A stretch of DNA of 64,000 bases from Hemiscyllium ocellatum (taxonomy: Eukaryota). Below are positions 1-55,814 of the stretch, piece after piece. Position numbers and translations under genes: made by a program. The DNA is taken from positions 2,046,001-2,110,000 of the forward strand of contig NW_026867603.1 in the NCBI RefSeq assembly GCF_020745735.1, in the 5' to 3' direction. A model generated the notes under the pieces. It was not told the DNA's origin, did no database searches, and saw only the letters and a program-made list of their open reading frames with translations. How positions within the stretch are numbered: the first letter of the stretch is position 1; each line of letters begins with the position of its first letter.

Positions 1-2540
1 GAACATTTTATTTTTAAGTTATGTATCTTGGAGAACTCGTCCCTCCTCTCATTGAATCAAGAATTCGCAGAGTCTCAGACACAATATAAACGTCAACAGT
101 TCATTCTAGGATCACGGCAACACTGTTCAATATTAAGAGAAAAAGATAAATAGTCGCAGAGTCATGGAGTGATTAAGCATGGAAACAGAAACTTTGGTCC
201 AGCCAGTCCATGCCAGTACTTTCCCAAACTAAACTGATCCCACCTGTGTGTACTTGGCCCATATCCTTCCAAATGTTTGATGTTCATTTACTTATCCAAT
301 TGTCTTCTGAGAGTTTTAACAGTACCCACCACAAACCATTCTCTGTGAAAAAGCTGTCTCCGTTATATTTTTTACATTGTTTCTCCTCTCATGATAAAAA
401 CATGTCACCTACTGTTGAAATCCACCAACAGAGTGCAAATAAAGTGGGCGGCATGGTGGCTCGGTGGTTAGCACTGCTAACTCACAGTGCCAGAGACCTG
501 GGTTCAGTTCCTGACTCAGGCAACTGACTGTGTGGAGTTTGCACATTCTCCCCGTGTCTGCGTGGGTTTCCTTTGTGTGCTCCGGTTTCCTCCCACAGCC
601 CAAAAATGTGCAGGTTAGGTGAATTGGCCACGCTAACTTGCCCTTCGTGTTGGGTGTAGGGGAATGGGCGTGGACTTGTTGGGCTGAAGGACCTGTTTTC
701 ACACTGTAAGTAATGTAATATGCCAATATCTTAGTCAAAACTTGAAGACAATCCCAGCTCCAAGCATTTACAAAATACCATTATGGATCATCCTTGTGCA
801 CAAAAAAGATTTCTCCTTTAATCAATGGTTTCTAAAAGTTGCTTGTGTATCTGTCGTAAAGGACGTTTTCCTAAACTTCTGAACTGCAAATTGTTCACAT
901 CCATCGGATTAAAGTAATTATGTGAATTACCCCACACACGAAAAAATAATCAAGCAAATTTGTTAAAAAGAGTTGCTCTGAGGAAGTCTACGATGGATTC
1001 ATTTATCAAATTAAATCATTTCCAATATTGTGAGGCCTCGTCTATCTTCTGTACAATAGTCTAAATTTTAAGTTCTGTCTGACTGCAGATGAAACTGATT
1101 TGTGTAGAAGTATGGTTTGAGTCTTTCACATCGTTAATATTTATTGCTGACTTTATTTGATTGGAGGGACGTTGTGCCAGGCATCGTTTGGCACCATCAT
1201 ATACATCATATACACATCGCTGGTGTCATGTGGAGTTTATTGATATGTGATGCTTTGAAACGAAAGCTTCGAAAATTTCCGGTATGAATCATGTCAATTA
1301 GAGCTATTCGCCATTCCACTCATGGCTTTATAAACTTACATGTAGTCACTCCCAAACCCGAACTCTCAACCTCCAGTGAAAAATGTTCAAGTCTATCTGG
1401 ATTTCCAACATTGATTCTGTTCCCACACATTCCATTGTTAAAGATCCTCCTGCCGCCCCAGGTCCACAGACAGCGTCCCTTGTTACGAGTTCAAAGAAGT
1501 GAAAGGAAGTTGTCCTACTATATTGTTCAATTTTAGTTGGCTTCAAAAATAAATGTTCATGTTATTGCTGATTTACTGGAGAATGCAATGTGCCAGTATC
1601 TGCTGAAATACATGCAGCACCATCCTGAACCTGATTTGCAGGTTCACCTGCTGCGCACATACGGAAGTGGGCATCAGGGAACAGTGAACATCGCCCACCC
1701 CCACAACACCTCACCGACACACTCAACCTCCCCTGTACTTTGGACTTTGTGAATTGCGTATTTTTAATAATCAGTTAATCCGAAGTGGTTTTTAAAACTT
1801 ATTTATTACATGTTGCTGATCTTGGCAAAATAAACGTATGTTGCTGTCAGCTTTTCTGGAGAGCATGTCTGCATTTTTCACGTGTCATTTCCATTGATTC
1901 ATGTTGCTGATCTTGGCTAAATAAACGTACGTTGCTATCACCATTTCTGGGGAAAATGTCTGTATTTTTCTCCTTTAAGTCAAGAATACTCAAAACGTCT
2001 TGAGAAACATCTAGCCCTTCTTCTTCCCCATAAGCCAGGATTTACAACATTGGAAATCATATCTATGATGAAAGTGGATTAGACCCTACGCAATGTTCCC
2101 AAATATTTACTTCAAGTGCTATCACCAGCAGGGTTATGGACAACATACTTTAAAGTGGGTGTCAGCTGGAAAGGTCTGTTTTCAGGTGGCACAGGTGCGA
2201 TGGGCGAAGCGGTCTCTCTTTGTCGTGAAAGATTTCTACAACTCTAAATTCATCTTTCTTACTTTGTCTAATTCAGAGGCTCTAATTCAAATGATTCATT
2301 CTGGATACATTCCAAGCCTTCGTTTTAATGATGTCACATGTCAATAAATTCCACCTGACACTCCTGCTCGCGATGTGGAAAATAATGGTTTAATTAATAG
2401 TGCCAGATGATGCCTAAGACAACATTCCTTTATTCAACTAATGTCAGCAATATTAATTAACAATTTGAAAAGCACAAACTGTACTTTTACCCAGTTTCAC
2501 CTGCAGTCAGACCCAAAATTCAAACCATTAAAGCTCTCTC
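1..2540 (+). repeat. Inverted segmental duplicate (copy A) of about 11140-13415
   Basis: 22-55 matches the reverse complement of 13362-13395 at 32/34 nt. 2181-2204 is the exact reverse complement of 11471-11494. The two regions are collinear throughout except for a SINE at 444-719. Confidence 0.92.
444..719 (+). mobile_element. tRNA-derived V-SINE (HE1-like)
   Basis: GGGCGGCATGGTGGCTCGGTGGTTAGCACTG head, conserved V-domain (GTTTGCACATTCTCCCCGTGTCTGCGTGGG) and CACACTGTAAG tail. Confidence 0.88.
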
Positions 2541-4769
2541 AACACTCATCCATTAAACACTGAAACGGTTGTTCAAAGATATTTTGCATATGTGTGTGTG
2601 CATGTCTGTGCCTGTTCGTTGTAAGCTACTCAACATTACAAAATCAGAAAGACAAGAGTAGTGGTTCAAGCCCCTTTACACTGCTACATCAAATGATTTC
2701 CATGATTGTACAGTCGATGTATGTGCTGGGTAAATCTCCCCCTATATTGCACTGTCCAATGCAATCATATCAAATACATTTTGGTTTATAGTAAAACAGC
2801 ATCCAGGATTCCCTGGAAAAAAAATCCTCCCAGAGCAGGCACAACACAGAATCGATACAGAATAAATCGTCTTGTAGAATATTAAACATTCCATGAGATG
2901 TGAAGAAAAGGTTAAATATAGGCTAAATCTGCATTAGGCTGAGCCATTAAACATTCCTCAGTCAAGAATAATACTGGTGAGATAAAATGATAACACTAAC
3001 ACAGTAAAGTTTTGCAGCCTCAATCATTTACAGGTCACTCAATACTCAGACAGATTTTCGAGAACATCTTGCCCTACTGACTCAAATCACTCTGAAGAAA
3101 TGGATGAATTTGGCTGAGAGGAGATGTTGGTGAGGTTTTGACTTCATGTTATTGAGAAAAACCTTGACTGACTGTGGAGAGGCAAAACAAGACATCAGAT
3201 ATAAAGACAAAAGTGGGCAAGGCAGGAGGGGAAGAGAGAAAGAGAGAGACTGAAACATTGGTTGTGCCAATATATCTCTTAATTATTTTTTTGACTAAAC
3301 ATGACAATTGATACCTCTGTCATTTAAGACTCATACAACCTATGAATCAAAAAGGTCCAACATAAATTACTAGTGGAATGCATTCAGTTACTTGCATTTG
3401 TTTTTGCCAATAATCGTGCTTTATGCTTGTGGGGAAGTACAAATTTGGGTTTTGTTGTTCTGTAATCTATTCTGTGAGTTCTATTTCTGTGTCAATTTAC
3501 AGAAATGCTTAATTAATTTCATGGAAATGTTGATGAGAGCAAAGCCAGATGAACGAAATAATTTACTGGTAAGTTTTAATTCGAAACAAGTTTATTTAAG
3601 AATGTTGACAGTTTGCAGAAAGGAATACAAATTAATGAACATTATTTGTAAGGGATGCTATTTATTTCAGGAAATTAAACACAATTTAACACTTTTATTT
3701 AGATTAAGAATTCCGTTCTGAAAGTTCTGCAATTAAACGTCTCTGTCCAACTACTATGAATGTCCCATTGATTTATATTGTAGTCCGTTTAGACAGGAAA
3801 ATATCAAAAGATTCAACACAGCTCAAAGTGCATTTTAGAATATTCATGTAAAATATTTGAAGTGACATCAGGAACTGCCGCAACAACTACATTTAATTGA
3901 TATAGTTGTTGCGAGGTATCATCAAGCTTTATTGATATAGTTGTTGCCAGGTTTTACCACTCATATATTTCCTTATATTCTTTCCTAAAATGTTGACATT
4001 GCTGGCAAGGTCAGCAATGAGTCCTTATCCCCTAACGCCCAATGTATAGCTTGTGAAGGCCACTTCAGAACGCAATGAATTACTTCCCGATTGCTCTGGA
4101 ATCTCACGTCGGCCAGATCAGGTAAAGGCGATAGATGCCTTTCCTAATTCATTAGTGAACCAGCTGATTTTGTATTTTTTCCATTGACTTTGATAACATT
4201 GCCACCATTCGGCTTTTTTTCTGATTCCATGATTTCTTTGAATTCTAATGTCACCCTGGGCAAACGATGGTATTCCAAACCCTGTCCATTCAGCATCAAA
4301 ATTGAGTTCGGGAAAACTGGTCTCGTGATATCACCACTGTGTTCCTAATTTTGGAAATGCAGGAGACATGCACGGAAAACGGTCACAAACAGAAATGCAA
4401 TAAATCTGACACTTTGTACCATGAACCAATATTGGACTGGAATACTGGCAAGAGTTATCTTTCTGTTCACAGCAACATCACAGGAGACCATGCATCCAAT
4501 CATCTATCTTAAAATCTGTATCGGACTGTTTGAACAGCCTGACTCCCTTGCTACATAATTCCCACATTTGTATTCTGCTTCTCTTTCAGATTTCCATACT
4601 CCACCACAAATTCCACTTTTTGACTTCTTGTTTGAAATATGAAAATGTCAGTCACATATCTCAAGAAGGTGGTCATCAGCTACTTTTTTTGAAAGGCTAC
4701 CATCTTGCTTGGGTAATTATGGTTGACCTTTCTGAAGAAGATTTATTACAACTGATTGACTTCTTATTT

Positions 4770-4942
4770 GAGAGTGTCGTGCTGGAAAAGTACAGCAGAT
4801 CAGGCACAATCCGACGAGCAAAAGAATTGATGTTTCGGGCATAATCCCTTCATTAGAATACCTAATGCTGCCTAATCTGCTGTGCTTTTCCAGCACTGCA
4901 CTCTCGACTTTGAGCTCAAACATATGCAGTCCTCACTTTCTG
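4770..4942. repeat. Palindrome of Penelope terminal fragments
   Basis: GTGCTGGAAAAGTACAGCAGATCAGGCA ... TGCCTAATCTGCTGTGCTTTTCCAGCAC arms flank a degenerate hammerhead. Confidence 0.75.
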
Positions 4943-4961
4943 CTAATGGATTTCTTAGTCA

Positions 4962-5277
4962 GTGGGCGGCACGGTGGCACAGTGGTTAGCACTGCTGCCT
5001 CACAGCGCCAGAGACCCGGGTTCAATTCCCGCCTCAGGTGACTGACTGTGTGGAGTTTGCACGTTCTCCCCATGTCTGCGTGGGTTTCCTCCGGGTGCTC
5101 GGTTTCCTCCCACAGTCCAAAGATGTGCGGGTCAGGTGAATTGGCCATGCTAAATTGCCCGTAGTGTTAGGTAAGGGGTAAATGTAGGGGTATGGGTGAG
5201 TTGAGCTTCGGCGGGTCGGTGTGGACTTGTTGGGCAGAAGGACCTGTTTCCACACTGTAAGTCTAATCTAATCTAAT
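4962..5277 (+). mobile_element. V-SINE (HE1-like), young full-length copy
   Basis: Full head with A/B-box-like motifs, V-domain and (TCTAA)n tail. Confidence 0.9.
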
Positions 5278-5289
5278 TTGGCACAGGAA

Positions 5290-7370
5290 AGGAACCGTCA
5301 TCTTATTGTTGGACTGGTAGGTCAGGCCAAGTCGAAGGGGCAGACGTTCCCCTCTGAAGGACAATACTGGACCATGTAATGTGCATCAAAACTTTGGTAA
5401 GTCCGTGATGATCGTTCATTACATCAGCATTTTCATTTCAAATCCTTTCATTAAGTAAAGTTGTCATGCTAGAGGTTGAAATCTTGATTCTGGAACTTTA
5501 CTCCAAACTTTTTGATTGCGTATTAAGTACTCGTAATGCCCCCTCAAACACTTAATCGAACTATCATGTTTGCGACGAATAATTGTTTTATTGACTCATG
5601 GGACGTGGTGGTTGTTATTAGCCGTTTGTCGGTATCCTTCAGAAGATAGCATTAAGCTGCGTTTCTGAAATCCCATGTTCAACGTGCCCTGAGGAAGGGA
5701 AAGCCAGATTTTGACCCAGTTACAGTAAAGGATAGATGATATATTTCCATGTCAAGATGCAGAATGGTTTAGAGAGGAGCTTACAGTTCTGTTATTCCCA
5801 TGTATCTCCTGCTCTTGTTTTTCGAGTTGCAATTGGGAGTAGGAAGTTACTCTCTAAGGAAGTGGCCAAATGACTGCAGTGTAGTTTTTTAGATAATGCA
5901 TATGGCAGGAACTGAGCATCAGATCTAGGGCAATGGACGGTTGTGAACATGCTGCTGATCAAGTGGGATGCTTTGTCCTGGACAATGCCAAGCTTCTTGA
6001 TAGCAGTTAAACCTGCTCCTATCCAATAAAAGGGAGAGCTGTGCTATTACAGTCCTGACTTCTGTCTTTTCTACAGTCAATTCTTTATGCGAGTCAAGAG
6101 GGTGAGTTACTCGCTGCAGTAATCCTAGCCTCTGGCCTGCTCTCACAACCATTGTATTTATATGAAGTTTCCAATTCAATTTCTAATCAACAAAAAACCC
6201 AGGATGTTGATGGTGAGAGATTCAGTGATGGTAACAATATCATGGGGTTTTAGTTAGACTGTCTCTGGTGGTCGCTGATTATTGTCTGGCAGTTTTGTGG
6301 TGTGAATGCTACTTGCCAATTGGCAGCACAAGTATGGATGTTGTACAGATCTTCCTGCATTTGACTGTGGACTTATTGCGTGTGTGAGGAGTCAAAAAAA
6401 AGTGCACTTTTCATTTCTAACCTTCTGATGGAGGAAAGGTCATTGATGAATTAGCTGAAGATGGATGGCCCGAGGACACTTTCTTGAAGAACTCCGACAA
6501 GATTTGCTTCGGCTGAATTGACTGACCTTCAGCAACCAGACCATCTTCCAATGTCTGTCCAGGCAGCGAGGAGTTTGTCACGTAATATCCATTGACTTCT
6601 GTTTTGCCAGGGCTACATAATACCGTACTCTGTCAAATTTGAATTTAATATCAAAGGCTGTCACTCTCCCTTCATTTCTGGAATTCGGTTCTTTGTCCAT
6701 GTTTACATCAAGTCTGTAATTCAGACAAGAGCTGAGTTGGCCTTTCTAATCCACATTGACCATCACCGAGCAGGTTATTGCTGGGCCAGTGTTGCTTGAT
6801 AGCACCGTTGATAGCACCTTCCTACACCTAACTCATGATTGGGCATGGACTGAAGGGGCAGTAATTCGTCAGGATGGTTTGTCCTATTTTCAGTGCACAG
6901 GACATGCCTGGCCTATTTTCCATGTTGCCAAGTCGATTCCAGTGTAGTAGATGTACTGGGACTGCTTGGCTAGCAGAAGTCAACAGTATTATTGTAATAA
7001 TTTTGTGAGGCTCCATAGCATTTTCAGTAACGAGAGTCCCAACCATGTCTTGATATCATATGGAGAGAACCAATTTCCTTGAAGACAGGTATCTGTAATA
7101 TTGGTGGTCATTGGAAGATGCCAAGATGGATAATACAATTGGCACTTCATGCTAAAGATTGCTGTGAATGCTGCAGCCTTACCTTTTGCACTGATATGTT
7201 ATGCTATCTATCACAGAGCATGGGAATATCTGTGGAACCTATTCCTCAAATGAGTTGTTTAATTAACAACCATAATTCACGACTTGATGTGGCAGCACTG
7301 CGGGCTGAGACCCGAGTTTCCTGAATTAATACTCAAACCACAATACCTGGAGACTATCGCCCACACCTAA
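5290..7370 (-). mobile_element. Degenerate CR1/L2-clade LINE (RT region and 3' end)
   Basis: ORF 5925-6179 (NWKLHINTMVVRAGQRLGLLQRVTH) resembles the C-terminal RT region of CR1/L2-group LINEs; many stops and frameshifts. Confidence 0.7.
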
Positions 7371-7479
7371 CTCACCACATGATGTGGCTATGCACAACAC
7401 GAGATCGCTTACCCTTTGTGTTTTGTAGATTCCAACCGTGCATCGTATATTTGCTTAAATTGTTAGTCTCGAAAATGCT

Positions 7480-7990
7480 TTATTTCACAGACTTTAGGAT
7501 ACAATGTTTTGTTTTTAATTCATTCTTCTGTCGGAAAGGCAAGTCATCGATGTCATACTGTATTCCAAGGTTTTCCTCCTCGTCAATTGCAAAACTAAAC
7601 GTTTTTTACCTCATCTTTGACCTTACTCATCAAAATTGCTACATTCTTGACGAGATCATTAATATACACTGCAGACAGCAAAGAATCCAACACCAAGTCT
7701 TTTAATAAGCCACTGGACAAGATATGTCTTCATAATGATTACCGTCGACCATTACCCTCGACCTTCTGCCACCAAATAAACGTTCGATGCATTTGCCAAA
7801 CTGCAAAAGATCCCATGAACTCTTTACTGAAGATGCAAGCTCTTGTCAAAAGCCTCATTGAAGTCAAGAAGCATTTCATCCATTTTTTACACTCGTTGAC
7901 AAATCTCATTACCTCTTCAGAAAGCAGAATCAACCATGTCCGATATGATATCACTTCCACCAAAGCCATGCTGAATTTTATTGTTTACAA
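7480..7990 (-). mobile_element. CR1 LINE RT fragment
   Basis: Minus strand reads like SCLTNLIxFSEEVMRFVNECK..DVxYLDFxKAFDK and, further on, KMR*KTFSFAID. Confidence 0.75.
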
Positions 7991-9159
7991 CTTACAATTC
8001 CAACTGTTAATGAATGCTGTCTCTTAGATTTATTTATTAACTTCCCTCATGCTTTCTACTTTTAAATATAGATTTATGAGCGAAACTACATATTGTCATT
8101 TACCTCCTTTGGCCCGATGGTAACTCTTCGTATCTCTCAGATAGGTAATTTATTATGCCTTAAATAATCTTTTGACGCTTCGTTTTTATTCTGGAAAATG
8201 GGAATCGAATTAAATGTAATTTTGAGGCCAACAGCCGTTTGTTCTTGATACTGTCAGTGTGTGTTCACCCACAGAGGCAGGATGACTGTTTGTGCTGATA
8301 ATACAGAATGTAGCGCCTGGTGTATCATTCTCAGCTGACACACAACTTCCTGTTTGTATGTGCCAGCAGCTGGCAAACATCTCACTTCTCATCAGAAAAT
8401 AAACTCAGGGGACACAATCTGGCGGAAACATCTGCCAATGTGGCCTATATCAGGGCACAAAGTGTAAAATGAGCATTGAAATGACCTTTCAATCGCTGTT
8501 TTGTGGTCCGATACTATGACGTCATTGGACGAGTCTCTCGACTATGTAACAAGCTCATTCGAATCACCACCGTCTGGAACATATCGACTGCACCGATTCC
8601 TGTCTTTGAGTAACTTCTTGTTACTCTCACTTCAGATTTAATGTTCCCAGTTTTAGATTCTGTCTTCTGTATATGTCACCTCCCCAGCTGAATACATTCT
8701 GTTTGATCTATTAATAGATTTTCATCAATTAAGCAAACAGTTTTGTAGAGACAGGTATGTCGGTGGGTCTGCTTAACAGAATCCATATATGGAGAGATCA
8801 CCTTGTCTGTGTCTAACGCTGACCACATTGAATAGAAATAAAGCACAGCACTGTATAGCTTCAAACTTTGCAAATCCTCTTTGAAAGAGCTAATTCTAAC
8901 GGCTAATTATTTTCTCGATTATTTCAGAAACTATGACTGAAAATGCCTATTTTTAACAGCGTTTCAAATATTCTTAAAATTTGAGTCACTGGCATTTCCC
9001 ACAGTCAGCTTTGTAGTATTTAACGTTCTGGTCAAAATTTGCTTCAAGCGGAAGTCTAAAACATTGTTTTTTCTAAGTTACCAGCCATTGTCCTTGCAGT
9101 TCCATAAAAACTGCGAGCTATTGATAAGCCCCAGAATGAACAGAATGTCAAGGCCCTGT

Positions 9160-10228
9160 ACACATGCAAACACCATGACACAGGCCTTGAAGCTCTCCAT
9201 TTTTTCCTGTTACACTAACCCAAGCAGTACCCTGCCTCTCACACTCTCATTCACTTGGCTGAACAGCTGAACCGTCAACTACTTTTACTTCCAATCGTCT
9301 CATTACCTCCAACCTAAAGGGGTAGCCATGGGCACCAGGATGGGCCCAAGCTATTTCTGCCTCTTCGTCGGATATGTGGAACAGTCAATCTTCCACAGCT
9401 ACACGGGTACCATTGCCCACCTTTACCTCCGCTACATTGATGACTGTATCAGCGCCATTTCATCTCGGAGTTTGAACAGTGCATCAACTTCACTAAAACA
9501 TTTCACCCTGACCTCAACTTCACAGGGACCATCTGGGATACCCCCTCCCATTCCTAGACCTCTCCATCTCCATCACCAGTTAACGACTAAACATTTACTA
9601 CAAGCTACTTGGACTACATCTCCTCCCACCCTACATTCTGTAAAAAAAGCCATCCCTTCTTCTCAATTCCTCTGCCTCCACCGCATCTGCTCCCAGGAGG
9701 ACCAATACCACCATAGAACGTACTAGATAACCTCATTTTTCGAAGACTACAATTTCCCCTCCCACCTGGTCGATAATGCCCTTGAAACCCCCATCCCCTC
9801 CAATCGCAGCAGGGATCCCTCTTGGTCCTCACCTTCCATCGCACTGACCTTGCATATATCATATCATCCTCCGCCACTTCCACCACCTGCAAGCAGACCC
9901 CATTACTTGGGGTATATTTCCCTCCCTACCACTATCTGCACTCTGCAGATAACATTCCCTCCACGACTCCCTCGTCAGGTCCACGCCCGCCACCAGCCCA
10001 CTCCCCACCCCGTCATCTTCCCCTGCCACCGAAGGAAGTGCAACACCTGCGCGCACGCCTCCCCCTCACCTCCGTCTGAGTCTGCACCACCAGATTTGGA
10101 GGCATCTACATCAGGGAGACAGGATGTCAACTTGTGGATCATTCCAAAGAACATCTCTGAGACACCTCCGCCAACCAACCCCACGGCCCCTTGTCTGAAC
10201 ACTTTAACTCCCTCTCCCACCCATCAAT
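9160..10228 (+). mobile_element. Penelope-like element fragment (RT to GIY-YIG)
   Basis: MGTRMGPSYFCLFVGYVEQS...LYLRYIDDCI is a PLE RT motif set. Cys-rich CHRRKCNTCAH and a GETGxxL..HFKEH-like endonuclease remnant follow. Confidence 0.85.
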
Positions 10229-10445
10229 AACAGGCTGGTCATATTCTGTTCATTTCCAGTGAATAAATACAAGATAACTGATCCTGAATTTAAATGGTAT
10301 GGTCAGGATTTATTTTGATAAAAGCAGGAACAGTGTATTTTGACATAACAGGTGGAGAGATTCACTTCCTGAAAAAGCAGCTCGAGTGATATAAGCTGAC
10401 ACCAAAACAAGTTTGGTCCAAACAGAGGCAAAATGCAGCATATAA

Positions 10446-10449
<4 letters not shown>

Positions 10450-10486
<37 letters not shown>
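10450..10486. repeat. (AT)n microsatellite
   Basis: About 18 perfect AT units. Confidence 0.95.
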
Positions 10487-10488
<2 letters not shown>

Positions 10489-10814
10489 CTGAGTGAAATA
10501 AATAAACAAAAACTATCTTAGCCCCGGAACAAGATAGGGTGTATTAAGTATAAACAAAGACACAACTATTTTAAATTGTAGTCGAAAATTAATTGATCGT
10601 ATATTGAAATGCAGCCAGAGCCGTATATTTGTGTTTTTGCATTCTTCCGATCTAAATTAATCATTTCATAAATGCTTTTGGTAAATGTCATGTATCACTC
10701 GTCTGTCCATTACACGAACCTTGCTAGGGCCTTGTTAAATTCTGAACCATCGTCTTCCTGGTTCACAGTGTTTGCTAGTTTCATGTTACAATAAATGGTG
10801 AGGTTGTGTACTGT

Positions 10815-12962
10815 ACGCCAATATCTTAGTCAAACATTTAAAGCAATCACAGCTCAAAATATTGCAAAATATCACTATGGATCTTGCTTGAGTCCAAAGA
10901 AAAATAGTCCCCTTTGAATCAATGATTACTAAAATTTGCTCACGTATATGCTGTGAATATTTTCAAACAACCTGAAGTGCACATGGTTCACATCAGTCAG
11001 AATAAAGTAACATTTCGTATGTTACCACACATAAAAATAATCAAGCAACTTTCTTGAAACAAGTTGCTCTAAGGAAGTCTACGATTGATTCTTTTATCAA
11101 ACAACATCATTTCCAATGTTATGAGGGCTCATCTACCTTCTGTGCAATGGTCTGAATTGTGTGTCTGACTGCAGGGGAAACTGGGTAAAATTACAGTTTG
11201 TGCTTTTCACATTATTAATTTATAATGCTGCCTTTGGTTGAATAAATGAATGTTGTCCCAGGCATCATCTGTCAGCATTAATTAGACCATTAATATCCAC
11301 ATCGCAAGCCAGAGTATCAGGTGGTGTTTATTGATTTGTGATATAATTGAAACGAAGGCTTGGATTGTTTCCGGTATAAACCATGTGAATTACATCCTCT
11401 TAATTAGGCAAAGTAGGAAAGATGGATTTAGAGTTGTAGAAAGCCTTCATGACAGAGAGAGATCACTTCACCCATCGCACCTGTGCCACCTGAAAACAGA
11501 CCCTTCCAGCCGACACTCACTTTGTAGCATGTTGTCTGTAACCCTGCAGGTGATAGCACTTGAAATAAATATTCGTGAACATTGCTTAGGGTCTAATCCA
11601 TTATCAACATAGATATGATCTCAAATGCTGTAAATCATGTTATTTGGGGAAAAAGTCGGGGCAAAATTGTATCAACATTCAAACAGTTGGTGCATACCTG
11701 AGGAGCATATGGGCCCATTTCTAAACGTTGTTTCTCAAGACATTTTGACGATTCGTTACTTAACATCAATGTAAACTGACATGAAAAAAATGCAGATAAT
11801 TTCCCCAGAAATGCTGACAGCAACATACGTTTATTCAGCCAGGATCAGCAACATGAATTAAGCAAGTTTTATTTTAAAAAACACTTCTTCTAACTGATTA
11901 TTTACAATATGGATTTCACAAAGTGCAAAGTACAGGTCGGGGAGGATTGGGGCCGTTTGTGGATGGTGGACGATGTTCGCTGTTCCCTGATATGTACTTG
12001 TGTTCGTAAGCAACAGGTGAATCTGCGAACCAGATTCAGGATGGTGCTGCAGGTATATCAGCAGATACAGTGTACATGGCATTCTCCCATAAAGCAGCAA
12101 TAACATGAACATTTATTTTTTATAGTATTTGAAGTCAAATAAAGTTGAACAATATGTCGGGACAACCTCCTTTCTTTTCTTTGAACTAGTATCAAGGAAT
12201 ACTCTCTATGGACCTGGGGTGGCGAGAGGATCTTTAGCAGCAGAATGTGAGGGAACAGAGTCAACGTTGGAAATCCAGATACACTGGAACATTATTCACT
12301 GGAGGTGAGAGTTCGGGGGGTGACCTCATATAAGTTTATAAAGCCATGAGTGGAAAGTTGAATGGATCTAATTGACATGATTCATACCAGAAATTTTTAA
12401 AGGTTTCGTTTCAAAAATATCACATATCAATAAACTCCACCTGTCATTCCAGCTAGCGATGTCGAAATTACTGGTGTAATTCAAGGTGGCAGACGATGCT
12501 AGGGACAGCATCCCTTTATTCAACTAAAGTCAGCAATAAATATTAACAATGTAAAGGCACACACTGTACTTTTAACCAGATCAGTCAGTTTCATCTGCAG
12601 TCAGACAAAAGTTAAAATTCAGACCATTGCACAGATGATAGACGAGCCCTCACAACATTGGAAATGTTTTTGTTATATAAAAGTATCCATCATAAACTTC
12701 CTCAGAGCAACTCGTGTCAACAAACTTGCTTGTTTTTTTTGTGTGGGGTAACTCAAGAAATGTTACTTTAATCTGATTGATGTGAAAAATTTGCACTTCA
12801 GAAGTTATTTGAAAACGTCCTTCACAACAGATACACAAGCAAATTTTAGAAATCATTGATCGAAGGGGGCAATCCTTTGTGGACTCATGCAAGACCCATA
12901 GTGATATGTTGTAAATGTTTGGAGCTGGGATTGTTTTCAATTTTTGACAGATACATTGGCGT
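10815..12962. repeat. Long imperfect inverted repeat (arms about 10815-11390 and 12360-12962)
   Basis: GTCTGACTGCAG 11163-11174 pairs with CTGCAGTCAGAC 12595-12606. GTTGCTCTAAGGAAGT 11063-11078 pairs with ACTTCCTCAGAGCAAC 12696-12711. Outer ends are CGCCAAT and ATTGGCG. Confidence 0.85.
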
Positions 12963-13415
12963 TATTTTCGTATGGTGGGGGATTTCAACAGGAGGGGGCA
13001 TGTTTTTACAATAAAAGGAGAAAAAGTTTTAAAAAGTTAACGGACACAACTTTTTTCACAGAGAATGGTTTGTATGTGGGATGATTTGGTGATGGGTATT
13101 GTTAAAACTGTCAGAAGACGTTTGGATAAGTAAACCTGTATCAAATGTTTGGAAGAATATGTGCCAAGTACACACAGGTGGGATCAGTTAGTTTGGGATT
13201 ATCACTGATATGGACTGATTGGACCGAAGTGATACCGAATGCTGTATCACTCCATGACTCTGAGACTATTTAACAATTTTCTCAATATCAAATAGTGCTG
13301 TAGTGATCCTCGAATGACCTGATGACGTTTAGATTGTGTCCGATATCTGCGAATATTTCAGTCAATGAGAGGTGGGACGAGTTCTCCAAGGTACAAAATT
13401 GAAAAAGACAATTTT
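11140..13415 (-). repeat. Inverted segmental duplicate (copy B) of 1-2540, upstream flank of the IgM cluster
   Basis: Same anchors as copy A; ends about 1.8 kb before the VH leader. Confidence 0.92.
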
Positions 13416-15111
13416 CTCCAGCATTGTTGCTGTGTAGATTTGTTTCTGCGAAGGCAGTGGTTATGGTTCGCAGTTGGCTTTCCACCAACTGGTCAATAGT
13501 GAGACAAAAATATCTTTGATCCACTGCAAAAACTCAGGTGCTTCCAGGAAATGAAACTGGGAACTCTAGGATCTTTTCTGCAGTCAGCTTAATTGCTGCC
13601 AACTATTGCATCTGGCAGATTAAAGGGAAAATGAATGAATCAAGATAAAATTCTACCGAACAAATTATATTTGCCCGTTTACTCACACTGGACAAATTTC
13701 ACGTAGCATTTCTTCTTTAAAAAAGAAAGTCACTGAATACAGCATTCAATGTAAGACTATCAGAAAACAGGAAATTGAATGCAATGACGTTCTGGTTAGT
13801 TCAGCCTGTTTATTGAGTATCTTAAAAGCTCCTGAATATGAAGTTAATGAATCCCATATCGCACATTGCAGTATCATTTATTATCATCTCAAAGTAAATT
13901 AACACACTTGAATTGGTTAAAACTCACATCACTCGTTGCACCATCCTCTGATTCATGCATCTCTTTAAAACTGGGAGGGCCCGTTATACATGGTTAATAC
14001 TAATGTAGTGTAACGGCGAGTTATTGCTGATTTTTACGAGTTAACTGCCCATGTCAGAGCCACCAGGGAATAGATTAATGTAGTGTTTATAACCTACATT
14101 CATGGTAATTATTATTGTAATACTATCTACATTAACCAAACACTCCTGATGTACAAGACAGTTACCTACAATGGTTTACATGTTGATGATTTACTTTTAA
14201 CTAATGGACTGGCCTGTTCCAGTTCATTAGATGATCTTTCAAAAGGTTACCTGGGTGTTTGGTATCACTGCCAAATCACGTTTTGGTTCTCAGGCACACA
14301 GCTTTGCTTTACGATGCATTTTAGGGTCGGAGCAATTAGAAAAAAAAGATTCAAGGAGAGACATTCTGCAATGTAAGGAGGTGCTTCTAATCTCAGGTGC
14401 TTCTAATTTCGTGACATGCACTTACATTCTGAACATAATCACTTCAGACATGCTCCATATTATGTTGCCTACATTGAATTTAGAAACGCCGATTTGAAAT
14501 GAAATATTAATTTGTAATGTCAGAGAGACTTTGAGGGACAGCAAAAATAAAGTCACTACTTTGTTGGCTAATAGTATTATTGAAGTTCTTTTTAGCTTTA
14601 TCTGCTTGTGGTTGAATGCAGAATTAAAGGGAGTTAATTTCTAATTGAATATTCTAAATATAATCACTTTGGACACGCTCTGTATTCAATTGCCTAAACT
14701 GAAGTTTGAAATGTTTCACATGAATTACATGCTATTTTGTAGTGCGACATAGAATTGCAGTGTCCAGGGAAAATAAAACTCAACTATTTAATTAGCTGGT
14801 AACGTCTTTGAACTTTAGTTTTAGTTTTATCTGCTTGTGGATGAACGCTGAAATAAAGGGAGCTAAATTCCAATTTAATTCGTTTTGTTTTTTGAAACAA
14901 AATACTTGTGACTATATCTGAATTAGACCGGAAGCTACTCAAATTTACTTCCACCATTTAAAAAAAACTTCCAAAGAAGCTATTTCCAAAACAAATATCC
15001 CAAGATGTGTATATCTCCATGTTAATGCATAACCTCATGTAAATACATGAGTCTATCTCTTCGGGCTGTGCAAGCTAATACCAGGATCCGGTCTCAGCAT
15101 CCAGCAGGAAA

Positions 15112-15158
15112 CCAATAGGTGGAAACTGTAAGCCTGAGCCTTCTGATGGTCATATTAA
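15112..15158 (+). promoter_or_regulatory. Putative VH promoter
   Basis: CCAAT 15112-15116, CRE/decamer-like TGATGGTCA 15144-15152 and TATTAA 15153-15158, about 90-130 nt upstream of the leader start. Confidence 0.35.
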
Positions 15159-15245
15159 TCCTGGGCACTGGACCATAATTCAACACTCCTGGATCGGCTT
15201 TGTTTAGAAAGATCTTGACAGAACCGTTTTCCACAAGTTATCACA

Positions 15246-15294
15246 ACGATTAGGTCGACAATTTTTCTAAGCTTGTTACTGACTGTCTTAACAT
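15246..15294 (+). pseudogene. IGHV: IgM VH leader exon 1 with start codon mutated to ACG
   Basis: ACG ATT AGG TCG ACA ATT TTT CTA AGC TTG TTA CTG ACT GTC TTA ACA T reads (T)IRSTIFLSLLLTVLT, a hydrophobic shark IgH-type signal peptide. It is followed by a phase-1 donor gtcagt at 15295 and an intron to the AG at 15422-15423. Confidence 0.8.
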
Positions 15295-15423
15295 GTCAGT
15301 ATTTTTTGTTCAAGTCTCTCTTTGTGACTGTCTCAATATCAGTCTACTGCAGCAATGTCAACGATTCAGCCATCATTTCATCAGCGTTCATGCTCAAGAG
15401 TATATTTATTTTCTTTTTTAAAG

Positions 15424-15729
15424 ATGTCCAGTAAAATGTTATTTTGACTCATCCAGAGGCAGGGATTGACCTTTCCGGAGGCACCCTGAGACTGACCTGT
15501 AAAACCAGCAAGTTCAATCTTTGCAGCTGCTACCTGCCCTGGGTCCGACAAGTTCCCGAGCAGGGCCTGGAGTGGCTGCTTGGGTACCAAACTTCATCCA
15601 ACAATAACTGTGCATCAGCGATTGAAGGTCGATTTACTGCTTCCATAGGCAGTTCAAACAACATTTTTGCATTGGACATGATTAACCTTAAGACTGAAGA
15701 CACCGCCAGTTATTACTGTGCAGTTGGTA
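15424..15729 (+). pseudogene. IGHV: IgM-type VH exon fused to a D remnant; in-frame TAA at 15432-15434
   Basis: [100 protein letters not shown]. Conserved [24 protein letters not shown] and EDTAxYYC match shark IgM VH frameworks. Confidence 0.95.
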
Positions 15730-15757
15730 CACGGCATTTATGATCAATACAGAACCG
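15730..15757 (+). other. Degenerate 12-bp-spacer RSS (3' D-type)
   Basis: Heptamer CACGGCA (15730-15736), 12-nt spacer TTTATGATCAAT, nonamer-like ACAGAACCG (15749-15757). No nonamer is seen at 23-nt spacing. Confidence 0.6.
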
Positions 15758-15869
15758 TATTCAGCCTCCATTATTTCTGCATTTATTAAATGATTACTTC
15801 TACAAATCGTCTTAACTTACAGTGCAGTATTAGTTCTGAGGGGTTTTATGCAAGAATCACTGTTTAATT

Positions 15870-15990
15870 TGTCATGATTTGGAGATGCCTGTGTTGGACT
15901 GGTGTGTACAAAGGTTAAAAAAAAGGTACAAAGGTGTGCTTCCAATTAAACCTGTTGGACTCTGACCTGGTGGTGTGTGATTTTTAGCTT
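15870..15990. mobile_element. Short Penelope-terminus-derived repeat fragment in the D-J interval
   Basis: GTGCTTCCAATTAAACCTGTTGGAC...CCTGGTG.TGTGTGATTTTT is the reverse complement of the family seen at 24226-24280. Confidence 0.65.
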
Positions 15991-16245
15991 TGTTTAATTT
16001 GTATAAGTGCTGATAAGTATTGATACGCCATTTGGTGATTTTCAGAATCAGCTCATATGTTACTCCGTGAAGTATAAAACAACATTAAAATTTGTCAAAA
16101 ATGATCAGAATCCACTAGCACAGTTATATGATTAAGATATATCGTGACTTTATTTTGCCTTTGGTTCCGAAAATTTAAAATAATGGTTGATTTTTGTTTT
16201 TTTTTATGCAGATCTAGTTATGGTGTGAGCAGTCCAGAGACTGTG

Positions 16246-16293
16246 GCTATCTTGATTACTGGGGCGAAGGGATCATGGTAACAGTGACTTCAG
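16246..16293 (+). pseudogene. IGHJ: JH segment
   Basis: Reads YLDYWGEGIMVTVTS (WGxG motif). Preceded by heptamer GACTGTG (16239-16245) and followed by the phase-1 donor gtaag at 16294. Confidence 0.95.
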
Positions 16294-16833
16294 GTAAGAA
16301 CTTTGAACTTTCTTAGAGACTTTTGTTAAACTTTGTATTCGTGTGACTAATTTCTGAATTAAGTGAAACTCACATTCTGTGCTGAGTTGGTTTGGTTCGG
16401 ATTGATTTTTTTTTCAGGCTGATTATAGACTTCAGTTAAGGTTCAGCAAATAGTTAAAATGGTGATGACGGAGTCATTTGCTCGGTGTATCTTTTTTTTA
16501 ATCAAGTGGTCATTCTGTGTGAAACATCTAATTTTGCTTAATCGGTCAGGTATAAATAATGTTTAATGTCAGTGACACCCTAACTGTGAGTTTTATTATC
16601 GACAGTAAATGCTCAGAATTAAAAGATTTTTGAAATATTAACAAACATGATTAAAATATACGAAAATATCATTGTTTATTTCTTGAATATATTTCCTGTA
16701 TACATAATGTTCTTACCATGATTATATTTTCTCCTTTATTTTGTTAATTTTGTTGATGACAAGCTGGTTATAAAATGTCTTTTTTGCGGTGCTATGTTTC
16801 ATTCTGTTGATTAGATTCTGAATTTTCTTGTTT

Positions 16834-17045
16834 GATTCTGTTGAATTGAGTTGACTTGGATTCTGACTTTGTTTTTACTTGGTTTTGTTGAATCACACTG
16901 ATTACCTTTTGAAATTGTTTTATAAGATTCAGTTGAATTGAGTTGGTTGGATTCTGATGATCTTTCATTTAAATCTGCTGTTTTCAGGTGATTTTATTAT
17001 GAGTTTATTTTATGAATCAGTTGCAGTGAGTTGATTGGATTCTGA
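16834..17045 (+). repeat. Three copies of a 32-33 bp motif at about 90-bp period in the J-C intron
   Basis: GA(T/A)TC(T/A)GTTG(AAT/CAG)TGAGTTG..TGGATTCTGA at 16834, 16926 and 17014. Confidence 0.8.
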
Positions 17046-19706: not shown

Positions 19707-22639
19707 TATTTACTTAGACATCAGTTAAAATGGGCAACTCCAGACAGAAGCAAATTTTCAATTTATACGTTTTTAAAACATTTTCGTACGTTACAAAACA
19801 GCTAACAAGAAACTGAACCACCCAGTGTAAAGAAAACCTGATAGTAAATACTTGCCCTATTTGTTTCATCAGAAACGCATTGCCACACTGGAATGGAGTA
19901 TTGGCTTTGTCCAGAACATGTAAAATCTTCGAGTACAAGAAATGTTTTAAGAATACGTAAAAATAATATAGAGAAGAATCCATTTCCTCTGAACCTGTGC
20001 ATAAATTTGCAATATGCGCTACATCAATAATGTTGTTAATTACAATGACCTTTTTAGTTGATTAAATGGGTGATGATCTATGTTCACTGTGAACCCATTC
20101 TCGTTCACATTAATGGGTATTATCTTTTTCATTCCTACGATGAATGTTCAATTACAGTGAATATATTGGACCTGAGGAATTGAGCAGATATATCTGCAAA
20201 GGCCAAGACTGTTGTACAGTATGTTTCAGTGCTATCTCCGACTAACTTGTCAACTGATCCTGACCATTTGTAAGTTGTCCGGTTCCAATACCTGAATCTC
20301 CGACAGTTCAATTTCATATCCCATTTCAAAACCATACTTATCTGCCAGAAATAGAATATTTGATTAAGTGCCTCTGAATTGAGAGCCCTGGTCATGTTGT
20401 AGTATCAGAACGAACACTTCAGTAACAAAAGGCAGATTGCAAGAGTGTTTCAATTGGTTGTTGGCAGCAAGGGATATATAATTGAGCGAGGCAGAGGAAA
20501 ATATGCTGCTTATTTTCTTTGTGCCTCGATTGTCCGGGACGCGTTTAGTGGCACAATGTAGGATCAGAAATTATTTTGCATTGTATTATTTGAAAACCTT
20601 TTGCCTGCTTTTAATGTCACTGGCAAATGTCATAATACAGTTCAAAATGTTTTAATCTATTTCTAACTAAGTAGACCATCTAGTGCATCAACATTAATGA
20701 GTAAGAGGAAGGGGGTTCAACGTTGAAGTCCAGTGACAGTGAATTTATGGCAGTGCAATTCATAGTATTATTCCTCTGCAGTTCCCATAGACTTTGGACA
20801 ATTCAGACCGAGAGTCAAAGTATTCCTGGAGAATTGTTGCAATGTTAATTTCATTGCATAAACATTCGGGAACAATCCTTATTTGTTGGAATGTGTTAAT
20901 AATTAACATGGTTTATGCACTGTAAAACAGGTGGGCTGTCCTCTCCGATATAGTGTCGAGCTCCTTGTGTTCAGGTCTGCTGTGATATTGTAGTAGTGAT
21001 CCTGACTCCATGCCACGTGGCCTGTGTTCACTTACAACCTGTTAGGGACGTATGTAACATCATCTCTATTTAGTTTCATTCGGGGCAAAAAACCAGATCG
21101 AGTCGTTTGGGTGTTTTTTTGGAATTCCATTCACAGAGGCCGTTGAAATCTATTCAATCGCAATCCTGATTTGTGTCTCTTAGATATTAAACAACTTTGG
21201 CGGTTAGGAGCTTTTTCCAAATCCATTTTTGTTCGCAAGCTTTTGGACATCGCTAGCTGGGGTTAATGGAGTAACTCCTCAAATAAATCCCAGCTTTTAA
21301 ATTACCATCCTAACAATAACATGTATAACTAATCCAGAATGAATTGTTTTGAAGCATTTTTGATGAGATTATGCCTAGGTTGTTTTATTTTATATTTAAC
21401 CAGTGCTGTGGTTGAATTTGATTGTTCAGTGCAGTGGGGGTTCCGCTGAATCCAACACTTCCAGCAGATGGTGATAGCCTTTCAACTAGTCTTCAGTTGC
21501 TATCTTACACCAGTACCTCTGCTAAGAATCCTTTTCCAACAGCAGTCAAGCAAACGTAATCGCTGTCTAATTAAGCAGGTGCCAAAAACATGAAAACAAT
21601 TTTCTGAAGGGGAATCTCGGAACGCGCAATGTTAACCTTACTTTCTCTCCAGAGCAGCCACGAGACCTACTGAGACTCTTCAGAAACTTCTGTCTTTATT
21701 TTGGTTTGCTAGCAATCAAAGTTTTTTCTTTCATTAAAAAGAAGTTCTGTTCGATTAAACAAGCTGTACAGAGAGACGATGCGTTTGAAGAAATTGAGAA
21801 TGTTCAGAGATATTTAATATCAGAAAATCATTGAATGTGAGTGCCCTGATTTCAAGCTGTATTTTCACAAGAAACTGTTTCGTGAAGTAACAACACACTC
21901 CAGATTGCAGTGACTGCTGTAATTGGGTGGGAGTTGTTTTGATCACTCAAATATAGAACGTCAATACTCGCGTTCCAAATTATCAACAGATTTTTTAAGA
22001 ATTTGTGAAACAATTCATTTGTTAAAATATTTTAATAAAAATTGTTCAGTGTCAGTGCTAGCCTAATGAAGGACACAATTGTAGGAAGGTGCAGGAGGAG
22101 GGCACTCAGCCCCTCGAGCTGTTCCCCTATTACTTAGATCATGGTGCATCTGCGCACTATTTTCTCAGGCCTCCCTTTGGCTAAAACTCTTTTCCATCTT
22201 TGACTAGCAAGTAAAAACTATCCATAGTTCAATGATTTTACTTTCCTTAACAAAGGGAGAAACCGTTGTTTAAAGACATTTCTGTGAGAAGTTAAAGTGA
22301 CCCATTGAGGCTGGAATTAATTGATCATGAAAATAATCTTTAAATCTCTGATACCTTACAATTTAAACATCCCAATCACCACATTCCATTAATTTAAGAT
22401 TATATTTCTTTATTCCAGGGAAGTATAATGTGTGATTTCTGCTTTAAAAAATGAGGCAATGTTCATTCCCACAACATGATTAAGAATTTGTTCAGAGAAA
22501 AAGAAGCCAAACTACACAGAAGGAAACCATTCACAATTCGTGTAAATACTTTTCCATGCTTCCAGTGATTATCTGCATCTCTAGACAGCTGTGGAAGTGT
22601 CAGGCTTTTCCTTGAGAAACAAAACATCATCAACTGACT

Positions 22640-24225
22640 TGAATTGCTAAAGTTTGTGTGGGGCAGTGTTTTCTCGAGGAATAAGACTGTGTTAAATTCT
22701 GGCTCTGTAACTTATGAAGGAGCAAAAATTGGCTTTAATAGAGTGGTATGTGCTTCTTGTCAGATGTGGGAATTTAAAGAGAGATTAAGCATTATTGCGG
22801 ATTATATCTGTCATAGGTCCTGTTGGATGCGAATCTTATCAGATCGAATGGATCGATTGGAGAGACAGTTAGAAGCAACAGTATATCATGGATGGCAGTT
22901 ATAGGAAGGGGCGATGTCTCAGATACTGTCACATAGATGGGTTAACTCCAGGAAATGTAAGATAGGTAAGCACCTAGTGCAGGAGTCTTGTGTGGATGTA
23001 CCGATTTCAATCAGGTATGCTGTTTTGAAAAATGTAGGGGGTGATGGAATCTCAGGGGAACATAGGACGAACAGCCAAGTTTCTGGTATTGAGACTAGCT
23101 CTAATGCAATGAGGGTTATATCGGCTTCAAAGAGATCAATTGCGTTCGGGGATTCTGCAATCCAGGTGTAGAGATACTTTTCTGTGACCAGCAGCGAAAA
23201 AGCAGAATGGTGTGTTGTTTCCCCGGTGCTAGGATCAATGATGTCTCAAAGAGAGTGCAGAAAGTTCTCATGGGGGAGAGGGGACAGCAAGAGGACATTG
23301 TCCACTTTGGAACCAAGGACAAAGGAAGGGAAAAGATTGAGATTATGAAGGGAGATTACAGAGAGATAGGCAGAAAATATTAAAGGAGGTCCTGGAAAGT
23401 AGTAATATCTGGATTATTCCTAGTGCTACGAGCTAGAGACGGCAGGAATATGAGGATAGAGCAGATGAATGCGTGGCTGAGCAACTGGTGTATAGGAGAA
23501 GGATTCACAATGTTGGATCATTGGAATTTATTTTGGGTAGAAGTGACCTGTACAAGAAAGACGGATTGCACCTAAATTGGAAGGGGACCAATATTCTGGC
23601 CGGGAAATTTGCTAGAGCTGAACGGAAGGATTTAAACTAGTAAGGTAGGGAGAGGGGTAGGGTGTGACCCAGGGAGATTGTAAGGAAAGAGGTCAATCTG
23701 GCACTAGTGCAGTTGAAAACAGAAGCGAGTCAAACAGTCAGAGCAGGCAGGGACAAAGTAGGACTAATAAATTAAACTGTGTTTATTTCATTGCAAGGGG
23801 CCTAACATGGAAGGCAGGTGAAATCAGGGCATGGTTAGGATCATGGGAGAGGGATATCATAGCAATCACAGGTACATGGCTCAGGGATGGGCAGGACTGG
23901 AAGATTAATGTTCCAGGATACGAATGCTACAGGAAGGATAGAAAGGGAGGCAAGGGAGGAGGGTGATTGATATTTTTGATAAGGGATAACATTACAGCTG
24001 TGCTGAGGGTGGATATTCCCGGAAATACATCCAGGGAAGTTGTTTGGGTGGAATTGAGAAATAAGAAAGGGATGATTATGCGCTTTGGGTTTGTATTCTA
24101 GACCCCCTAATAGTTAGAGGGATATTGAGAAACAAATGTGTAAGGATACCTCAGCTATATGTAAGAATAATAGGATGGATATGATAACGATTTTAACTCT
24201 ATAAACATATACTAGGAAAGCAAAG
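22640..24225 (+). mobile_element. CR1 LINE 5' part: ORF1 (Zn/coiled-coil, SGNH esterase) and ORF2 endonuclease start
   Basis: VVCASCQMWEF...CHRSCW..DRMDRLERQL; IAFGDSA followed by MVCCFPGARINDVS; DIIAITGTWLRDGQDWKINVPGYECYRKDR. Confidence 0.9.
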
Positions 24226-37334: not shown

Positions 37335-37620
37335 TTAGATAACTTATAGTGTGGAAACAGGCCCAACACGTCCACACCGAACAGCAGCCCACCCATTCCC
37401 TACATTTACTCCTTCACCCAACAAATTAGCATTGCCAATTCACCTAACTTGCACGATTTTAGACTGTGGGAGGAAACCAGATCACCCGGAGGAAACCCAC
37501 GCACACAGGGGTAGAATGTGCAAACTCCCCGTGTGTACACAGACAGTTGCCTGACGCAGGAAACCCGGGTCTCTTGCGCGGTGAGGCAGTAGTGCTAGCT
37601 ACTGTGCCAATGTACCGCCC
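37335..37620 (-). mobile_element. V-SINE (HE1-like)
   Basis: Reverse-complement copy (AGTGTGGAAACAGGCCC ... ACCGCCC). Confidence 0.8.
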
Positions 37621-37639
37621 ACTGTTCTTTTCCTTTGCC

Positions 37640-38610
37640 TATTCTTTAGGCAAGATAAAAGAGATTGGAACAGACACACTGTTTGCTGGTACTTGACACT
37701 CCAGATACATCGGATCATCCTTCATCATTTCCGCCACCTCCAAATGGACCCCACCCCTATCAGCATTCTGGAAAGACCACTCCCTCCGGGACTTCCTTGT
37801 CAGATCCACACACACCCCCACCCCCCCCCCCCCCCACCAACCAAATCACCACTCCCGGCACCTTCCCCTGCAACTGCAAAAAATGAATAATTGCGCCTAC
37901 ATCTCCCCCCTCACTTCCCTCCAAGGCCCCAAGGGATCCTTCAATATCCATCAGAAATTTACCTGCACCTCCATACACATCATTTACTGCATCCTCTGCA
38001 CTCGATGTGGCCTCCTAGATATTGGGGAGACAGGCGCCTACTTGCGAAATGTTTCAGAGAACACCTCTGGGACACCCAAACCAACCAACACAACCGCCCC
38101 ATGGTTGAACACTTTCACTCCCCTTCCCACTCCGCCATGGACAGGCAAGTCCTTGGCCTCCTCCATCGCCAGACCATGGCAACACGACACCTGGAGGAAG
38201 AGCAACTCATCTTCCGCCTATGAAACCTCCAACCACAAGGGAAGAATGCAGATTGTTCCAGCTTCCTCATTTTCCCTCTCCCCACCTTTTCTCAGTCCCA
38301 AACCTCAGACTCAGCACCGCCTCCTTGACCTGCAATGTTCTTCCCGACCTCTCCGCTCCCACCCCCTCTCCAGCCTATCACGCTCACCTTAACCTCCTTC
38401 CACCTATCGCATTACCATCGCCCCTCCCCAAGTCCCTCCTCCCTACCTTTTACCTTAACCTGCTTGCCACACCCTCCTCATTCCTGAAGAAGGGTTGATG
38501 CCCGAAACGTCGAATCTCCTTCTCCTTTGATGCTGCCTGACCTGCTGCGTATTTCCAGCAACACATTTTTAAGCTCTGATCCCCAGCATCTGCCGTCCTC
38601 ACTGTCTCCT
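37640..38610 (+). mobile_element. Penelope-like element 3' half (GIY-YIG and terminus)
   Basis: FTCTSIHIIYCILCTRCGLLDIGETG..L..CFREHL..., RHLEEEQLIFRL and the terminal hammerhead. Confidence 0.88.
38480..38515 (+). ncRNA. Minimal type I hammerhead ribozyme
   Basis: attc CTGAAGA a GGGT tgat GCCC GAAA CGTC gaat. Confidence 0.65.
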
Positions 38611-44683: not shown

Positions 44684-44975
44684 TTAGATTAGACTTACAG
44701 TGTGGAAACAGGCCCTTCGGCCCAACAAGTCCACACCGACCCGCCGAAGCGCAACCCACCCATACCCCTACATTTACCCCTTACCTAACACTACGGGCAA
44801 ATTAGCTTGGCCAATTCACCTGACCCGCACATCTTTGTGACTGTGGGAGGAAACCCACGCAGACACGGGGAGAACGTGCAAACTCCACACAGTCAGTCGC
44901 CTGAGTCGGGAATTGAACCCGGGTCTACAGGCGCTGTGAGGCAGCAGTGCTAACCACTGTGCCACCGTGCCGCCC
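44684..44975 (-). mobile_element. V-SINE (HE1-like), young copy
   Basis: Near-identical reverse complement of 4962-5277. Confidence 0.9.
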
Positions 44976-50710: not shown

Positions 50711-50729
50711 CATACCTGGAGGTCAAGTA

Positions 50730-51005
50730 ACGCTCTGGGGCCCCGGGTTCAAACGCTGCCCCAGCAGATAATGTAACCCGAATTCAATAAAATAAGACTC
50801 TAATGATAACCATAAACTGATTGGCTACTGTCAAGAAAATCCAACCTGGCTCATGAATGAGCTTCAGGAAATGAAAGTAACTTGTTCTGGCTTCCATGTT
50901 ACTCCATACCCACAGCAATATCGCTGACTCTTAACTGGCCTCTGCTTAATTAGGTACAGACAAAAAATGCAATCCTGGCCATCGATGCTCTTATTCCATA
51001 AACGA
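50730..51005 (+). mobile_element. Short interspersed repeat (same family as reversed 3980-4300 and 5290-5450)
   Basis: GCTCTGGGG.CCCGGGTTCAAA head and CCCACAGCAAT..G.TGACTCTTAACTG body. Confidence 0.5.
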
Positions 51006-51900: not shown

Positions 51901-52095
51901 AATTACAAATGGAAGCTGCCCACGGATCGTTTGAAATTGACAAATATTGATTTGTTTTTCACGATATCGTGGGGAGGAGAAATGAACCGGACTGATGCAA
52001 AATGGACACTTTGCACAGCTAATTCAAGTATTCTTCCTGCGCAGTAGGTACAGTCAGTTTTATATGGTTACAGAAGTGAACTGTGGTTACAGGAA

Positions 52096-54170: not shown

Positions 54171-54179
54171 GATCTTCCT

Positions 54180-55810: not shown

Positions 55811-55814
55811 TGCT

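Follow-up and report, generated by a model that had tools for sequence, protein, structure and literature searches.

The window, by which we mean the whole 64 000-nucleotide stretch of Hemiscyllium ocellatum DNA analysed here, contains an IgM heavy-chain cluster on its plus strand, and its left end resembles the upstream flank of that cluster in inverted orientation. The question is whether a second cluster lies just beyond the left edge, head-to-head with the first. The original prediction had started from a collinearity between positions 1–2540 and the reverse complement of about 11140–13415. On local alignment, the homology was found to cover positions 1–2529 (copy A) and the reverse complement of 11146–13416 (copy B), with 84% identity over 2181 aligned columns and a score of 1904, compared with 27–35 for 20 shuffles. 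A repeat search gave a chain of collinear inverted segments leading from 1–71/13346–13416 to 2000–2529/11146–11675, and the same picture was obtained by BLAST. Both anchors that had been named were real: 22–55 and the reverse complement of 13362–13395 agreed at 32 of 34 positions, and 2181–2204 and the reverse complement of 11471–11494 at 24 of 24. The match had also been said to reach the window edge, and the homology does begin at base 1 and is thus cut by the edge; its other end lies at 2529 in A and at 11146 in B. The distance from the end of copy B to the VH leader, put at about 1.8 kb beforehand, was measured as 1830 bp (from 13416 to the start of the degenerate leader at 15246), with 2019 bp to residue N of the V open reading frame (15435). 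The two arms differ by 16–19%, by one SINE-like insertion and by several indels. Long collinear reverse-complement homology so far above chance is that of an inverted segmental duplication. Very probably, to judge from the sequence comparisons set out below, an old duplication of this kind produced two arms, with 1–2529 and 11146–13416 as their outer ends, that form an imperfect palindrome around 8.6 kb of unique sequence; a whole pre-joined IgM minilocus would have been copied in it, along with about 4 kb of the flank on its 5′ side, to give head-to-head clusters. On this reading copy B (plus strand) is the distal 5′ flank of the window's cluster and the second duplication arm, and copy A (minus strand) would be the distal 5′ flank of the predicted minus-strand IgM cluster.

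Protein searches with VH led to gene models of Chiloscyllium punctatum, and the loci of these models (L001, L002 and L004, all from C. punctatum) were compared with the window. Locus L002 (BEZZ01001741.1:120444–142208) carries two head-to-head IgM clusters, termed M (minus strand; VH 2561–2256, JH 1870–1826) and P (plus strand; VH 11397–11696, JH 12082–12126, CH1 21345–21699). They lie on the arms of a palindrome (1472–4008 against 12493–9958, 82.5%) that include V and J as well as the counterpart of the window's proximal flank, so that in L002 the homology runs through the gene bodies on both arms. One unbroken alignment between window 12260–15872 and L002 8256–11836 (82%, 3652 columns) ties copy B to the V exon.

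The cluster of the window was annotated as follows, all features being on the plus strand. The proximal 5′ flank (13417–15245), the mirror image of which is expected just left of the window, is followed by a leader exon (15246–15294) with ACG in place of the start codon; three relatives have ATG at this place, and the window VH has thus lost its start codon. The V exon begins at 15424 and has an in-frame TAA at 15432–15434, after which a V-set open reading frame extends over 15435–15740 (Pfam V-set, 6.8e-11). A 12-spacer RSS (15730–15757) comes after a short VD junction, the V being fused to a D remnant. JH (16246–16293, YLDYWGEGIMVTVTS) is followed by a splice donor. An open frame with the Cmu1 exon (28668–29024; Pfam C1-set, 2.8e-5), which sets the orientation of the cluster, is 76% identical in amino-acid sequence to L002 21345–21635, and a TM-like exon (at about 29.6 kb) containing …EEDNSNICTTASTFITLFFLSIF… is found about 0.5 kb past Cmu1, within the stretch 28668–29785. 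CH2–CH4 open frames were looked for between CH1 and the TM-like exon, and none were seen. The leader and V-set, the J with its WGxG motif and splice donor, and the Cmu C1-set, all on one strand, identify a cartilaginous-fish IgM minilocus. Its reading frame is broken (ACG start, TAA at 15432–15434) and its Cmu1–Cmu4 set is incomplete, which excludes a functional member of the family; the window's cluster is a plus-strand, pre-joined IgM pseudogene. When codon 15432–15434 was aligned with L002 M, L002 P and L004, it was found to be TAA in the window, TAG in L002 M, and TCC or TCG in the intact clusters. The stop thus occupies one and the same codon in the window V and in L002 M, which places the nonsense mutation before the two lineages separated. 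L002 M was also seen to have a further, private TAA (2215–2775 region).

Several other observations were made in and around this cluster. Upstream of JH (16186–16245) the RSS looks degenerate, with a heptamer-like GACTGTG at 16239–16245 and a distance of 33–40 bp, not 23 bp, to the nearest T-rich nonamer-like run. The proximal V flank contains a tandem duplication of about 225 bp (14426–14650/14651–14879, 71%), which is older than the inverted duplication because both L002 arms have it (3117–3346/3345–3572 and 10393–10596/10609–10814). LINE-type retroelement debris (endonuclease/reverse transcriptase and reverse transcriptase C-terminal frames, on both strands) was found at 22600–27600 and 49400–57600, where it occupies much of the J–Cmu1 intron and of the right third of the window. 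Two further pairs of similar segments were recorded, 26812–27196 with the reverse complement of 60611–60988 (71%) and 30595–30990 with 38206–38601 (82%).

The inner structure of the two copies was resolved by means of a nested inverted repeat of about 580 bp. On the B side, the full-length left arm (B_L, 10814–11397) and the right arm (B_R, 12364–12962) are 78% identical over 603 columns (10815–11397 against the reverse complement of 12364–12962). On the A side, the arm A_R (722–1300) has as its partner A_L (2279–2529), which is truncated and has the duplication breakpoint inside it; 1077–1304 matches the reverse complement of 2279–2512 at 72%, and 719–1300 matches 10814–11392 on the plus strand at 73%. 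In the four-arm alignment, the arms pair by position (A_R with B_R 82.3%, A_L with B_L 82.4%; K2P 0.20), as compared with 74–80% between left and right arms (K2P 0.23–0.33), and indels are common within each positional pair. Because the arms pair by position and share indels pairwise, the nested repeat is older than the A/B duplication. The A-side breakpoint falls within the left nested arm, and the left arm of L002 is truncated at the same place.

Copy A also carries a SINE-like element (444–720, plus strand, about 280 bp), which makes the only large gap in the A–B alignment and has no counterpart in copy B or in L002. Its empty site in copy B (reverse complement) lies between ...AAAATAAC and GCCAAT..., and at the insertion point L002 joins 8950 to 8940. 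A later insertion specific to one arm, with the matching site empty in the other, marks A and B as paralogous genomic arms. Relatives of the element were found at 4961–5272, 37342–37624, 44684–44975 and 52095–52387, and both SINE-like insertions of window 1–6052 are missing from L002. A tRNA-derived origin was considered and dropped, ARAGORN and Rfam having given no tRNA match for the element, and only the term SINE-like was kept. An Rfam match to MIR5638 at 4770–4910 was discarded as chance, its score being 27.8 bits and the gathering score 500.

Between the copies lies a unique spacer of 8616 bp (2530–11145) with no A/B homology. Its first part (2530–6052) is conserved in L002, window 1898–6052 matching L002 7792–4008 at 87–90%; the second (6053–10813) contains many transposable-element fragments, including a reverse transcriptase fragment at 9271–9723 (RVT_1); and the third (10814–11145) is the portion of B_L that is absent from copy A. 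The spacer of about 8.6 kb that had been proposed between the divergent clusters is therefore correct for the unique sequence between the arms but not for the distance from leader to leader, which would be about 17 kb.

The correspondence between the window and L002 extends over both arms. Window 2–6052 matches reversed L002 9396–4008 (84–90%), and window 13975–19342 matches reversed L002 4010–3 (89–91%). Copy B together with its flank (11147–15872) matches L002 7145–11836 on the opposite strand, copy B alone corresponding to L002 7145–9396 (plus strand), with 79–86% identity in either case. The flank and V of the window gave K2P values of 0.110 to L002 M and 0.177 to L002 P, and M and P are separated by 0.152; copy A gave 0.119 (89% identity) to segment U, the flank of the P cluster in L002, with 0.224 between A and B and 0.186 between B and U. 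The derived states common to the window V and L002 M are the stop at the same V codon and the short VD junction with the 12-RSS; in L002 P the V-D-D junction is longer and the RSS is the same. Copy A and U have the truncated left arm in common as a derived state. The L002 segment closest to copy A leads without interruption to a cluster (leader, pre-joined V-D-D, J and Cmu1) that is oriented away from the cluster corresponding to that of the window. The inverted duplication apparently took place before the window and the C. punctatum L002 locus separated. L002 has no equivalent of window 6053–13974, copy B and the spacer part rich in transposable elements included, the equivalents of about 6045 and about 13975 being joined there by a few filler bases (L002 4008–4010). 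This 7.9-kb difference is read as a probable deletion in L002, since copy B passes without a break into the flank common to both L002 arms; an insertion in the window's lineage would be the alternative. L002 differs from the window by about 11%, and the inter-cluster centres are not identical in the two species; L002 could be a co-paralogous pair and not the strict orthologue.

The features of L002 P were transferred to the left of the window by the rule that the window position equals 9398 minus the L002 position. On the minus strand, the leader ATG is thereby predicted at about −1.81 kb, the V exon at −2.00 to −2.30 kb, J at −2.68 to −2.73 kb (−2684 to −2728) and Cmu1 at about −12 kb. A minus-strand VH leader roughly 1.8 kb left of base 1, as originally proposed, is thus favoured by the synteny with L002 and by the other flank copies linked to VH. 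In all likelihood the left neighbour of the window is the counterpart of the L002 P cluster, in view of the homology that reaches the window edge and of the synteny in another species.

The duplication might instead have been confined to the flank, in which case copy A would be a solitary inverted fragment of IgM upstream sequence, with the homology ending shortly left of base 1 and no V gene beyond it. Nothing within the window shows the homology going on, and at its opposite end (2529/11146) the duplication simply breaks off, as this explanation would allow. However, the L002 segment closest to copy A continues into the V-D-D-J-Cmu1 cluster, and the other flank copies likewise lead into clusters: copy B does so in the window, and in L004, an unjoined cluster of C. 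punctatum, the flank lies upstream of V (window 11712–15020 against L004 6613–9856, 83%; copy B against L004 6613–8286, 83%). We therefore regard a flank-only duplication as improbable and retain the predicted cluster left of the window as the preferred reading.

Contigs from four runs of a close relative, probably a sister species and not the source animal, were compared with positions 11000–16999. Among the public runs examined over 1–6000 and 11000–16999, none agreed with the window at about 100%; the best share 0.30–0.43 of the 31-letter words, and their longest contigs are about 97% identical to it. At a likeness of at least 80%, 1–12 distinct contigs were found per listed position with no drop at 13416, figures that show multi-copy cover and not true copy number; this cover fits a flank common to a few tens of IgM clusters. 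A fragment between V and J (15874–15993) was seen to be an extremely high-copy repeat in the same contigs, with a summed depth of 2×10^5 to 1.2×10^6 compared with about 10^2 to 4×10^3 in its surroundings, and hundreds of loose contig ends were counted at 15874/15875 and at 15985/15986/15993. The repeat forms part of the V–J distance of 505 bp in the window and is missing from L002 M (V–J about 386 bp).

A and B could also have arisen as independent insertions of a dispersed transposable element unrelated to Ig clusters, for example one of the foldback type with inverted arms of about 580 bp. The long inverted repeat inside the unit would suit such an element, as would the multi-copy cover of all of 11000–16999 in the relative's contigs. 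The A/B homology, however, reaches at least 720 bp past the nested inverted-repeat arm and is without a bound inside the window, and no defined termini (TIR or TSD) were found. The contig multiplicity is that of the neighbouring flank and lies about 1000-fold below that of the true repeat at 15874–15993 (2.6–3.2 orders of magnitude in the four runs). Further A/B-like copies were searched for in the 64-kb window, in L005 and in the whale-shark locus L003, and none were found. The three readable copies (window B, L002 and L004) are all joined to VH by continuous homology, 1.9–2.0 kb upstream of the VH exon and in the same orientation; because each of them sits there, the repeat is taken as cluster flank and not as a transposon, and an origin by transposition is considered highly improbable. 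Ig cluster arrays are hard to assemble, and a haplotig falsely inverted or duplicated would yield a similar picture, but artefactual palindromes have near-identical arms, whereas A and B differ as described, the independent assembly of another species has the same head-to-head layout, and the relative's contigs cross the B-side boundary at 11106–11500 with 97.7% identity, which makes an assembly artefact the least credible of these explanations and one with hardly any probability left.

For the preferred reading, an inverted duplication of a whole pre-joined cluster, the following order of events is proposed. A nested inverted repeat would first have formed in the flank. Germline V-to-D joining would have followed, with the D2-type 12-RSS now common to both arms; because the pre-joined cluster itself was copied, the joining is placed before the inverted duplication. 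The cluster and about 4 kb of flank would then have been duplicated in inverted orientation (arm K2P 0.15–0.22), and a nonsense mutation, common to L002, would have arisen in the M-type V before the lineages parted (K2P about 0.11). The last steps would have been SINE-like insertions and the loss of the start codon, both in the lineage of the window. The window's plus-strand cluster, with V at 15.4 kb, would be one product of the duplication, and a minus-strand cluster, with its leader about 1.8 kb left of base 1, the other. Both appear to be non-functional; at least the window's cluster died after the duplication, having lost its start codon, acquired a stop at the start of V and retained no CH2–CH4. 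The head-to-head structure is accordingly regarded as a relic of gene-family expansion, with no sign of a working element. Hairpin priming at the nested repeat was considered as the origin of the duplication and rejected: it would leave one central copy of the repeat, and each arm has its own. The palindrome is not of the fold-back type, the spacer being 8.6 kb long and asymmetric and the nested inverted repeat being present in each arm.

A third, more distant cluster was observed in L001 (C. punctatum BEZZ01001580.1; 15–2415 and 8848–20555; about 80% identity). Both the spacer (window 4149–6974) and the V-proximal flank occur in this locus, arranged, oriented and spaced as in the window, with a gap of 6382 N between them; an N gap of L001 also falls at the place expected for the A/B-like flank. 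L004 likewise contains an N gap, and in both loci the gaps lie where a partner cluster would show. The arrangement in L001 points to a copying of clusters along with over 11 kb of the DNA upstream of them; the copied units may even have been whole pairs. On this basis, since in L001 the inter-cluster spacer precedes the locus's own cluster and is oriented as in the window, one might propose that this IgM minilocus subfamily multiplied in hemiscylliid sharks by whole head-to-head pairs instead of by single clusters, and that pairs persist because arm-to-arm gene conversion is favoured by the palindrome, or because it lets the V-D-D of one cluster join the J of the other by inversion; we hold this to be a speculative and rather unlikely extension.

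That shark Ig genes are organised in multiple clusters and undergo germline joining is textbook knowledge (PMC5192425). The arrangement described here follows the cartilaginous-fish multi-cluster IgH pattern, with a self-contained V-(D)-J-Cmu cassette as its unit. Nurse-shark IgM miniloci are reported to lie at least 120 kb from each other (PMC2435157); unlike these, the pair at the window would be head-to-head, with about 17 kb between leaders, and would form the arms of one inverted duplication. As in the germline-joined (VD-J, VDD-J) shark Ig genes (PMC5192425), the window V is fused to a D remnant with a 12-spacer RSS, and L002 P is V-D-D joined with the same RSS; unlike in those genes, the pre-joined cluster appears here to have been copied in inverted orientation, and one copy at least has become a pseudogene. 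The zebrafish IgL V-J-C clusters (PMC3014032) are comparable in that neighbours are oppositely oriented, a geometry that allows inversional joining between clusters; in contrast to the teleost IgL case, a heavy chain of a shark is concerned here, and the window copy is unable to make protein. The relative orientation of the published nurse-shark miniloci is largely undescribed (PMC2435157, PMC5192425, PMC12227049), a 2025 paper states that the distribution of shark IgH clusters “is not well known” (PMC12227049), and a literature search for head-to-head or inverted IgM clusters in sharks gave no specific description.

The window pair is a new example of known processes, and its immunological consequence is probably nil because the window copy is a pseudogene. 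For shark IgM genes, it would mean that some miniloci form close divergent pairs that arose by inverted duplication of an already pre-joined cluster, and that a head-to-head pair of this kind already existed before the C. punctatum lineage branched off and has persisted ever since. It would also provide a dated order, from nested inverted repeat through germline joining and inverted duplication to decay, and a concrete locus at which to examine whether Ig clusters expand or are homogenised through palindromic pairs.
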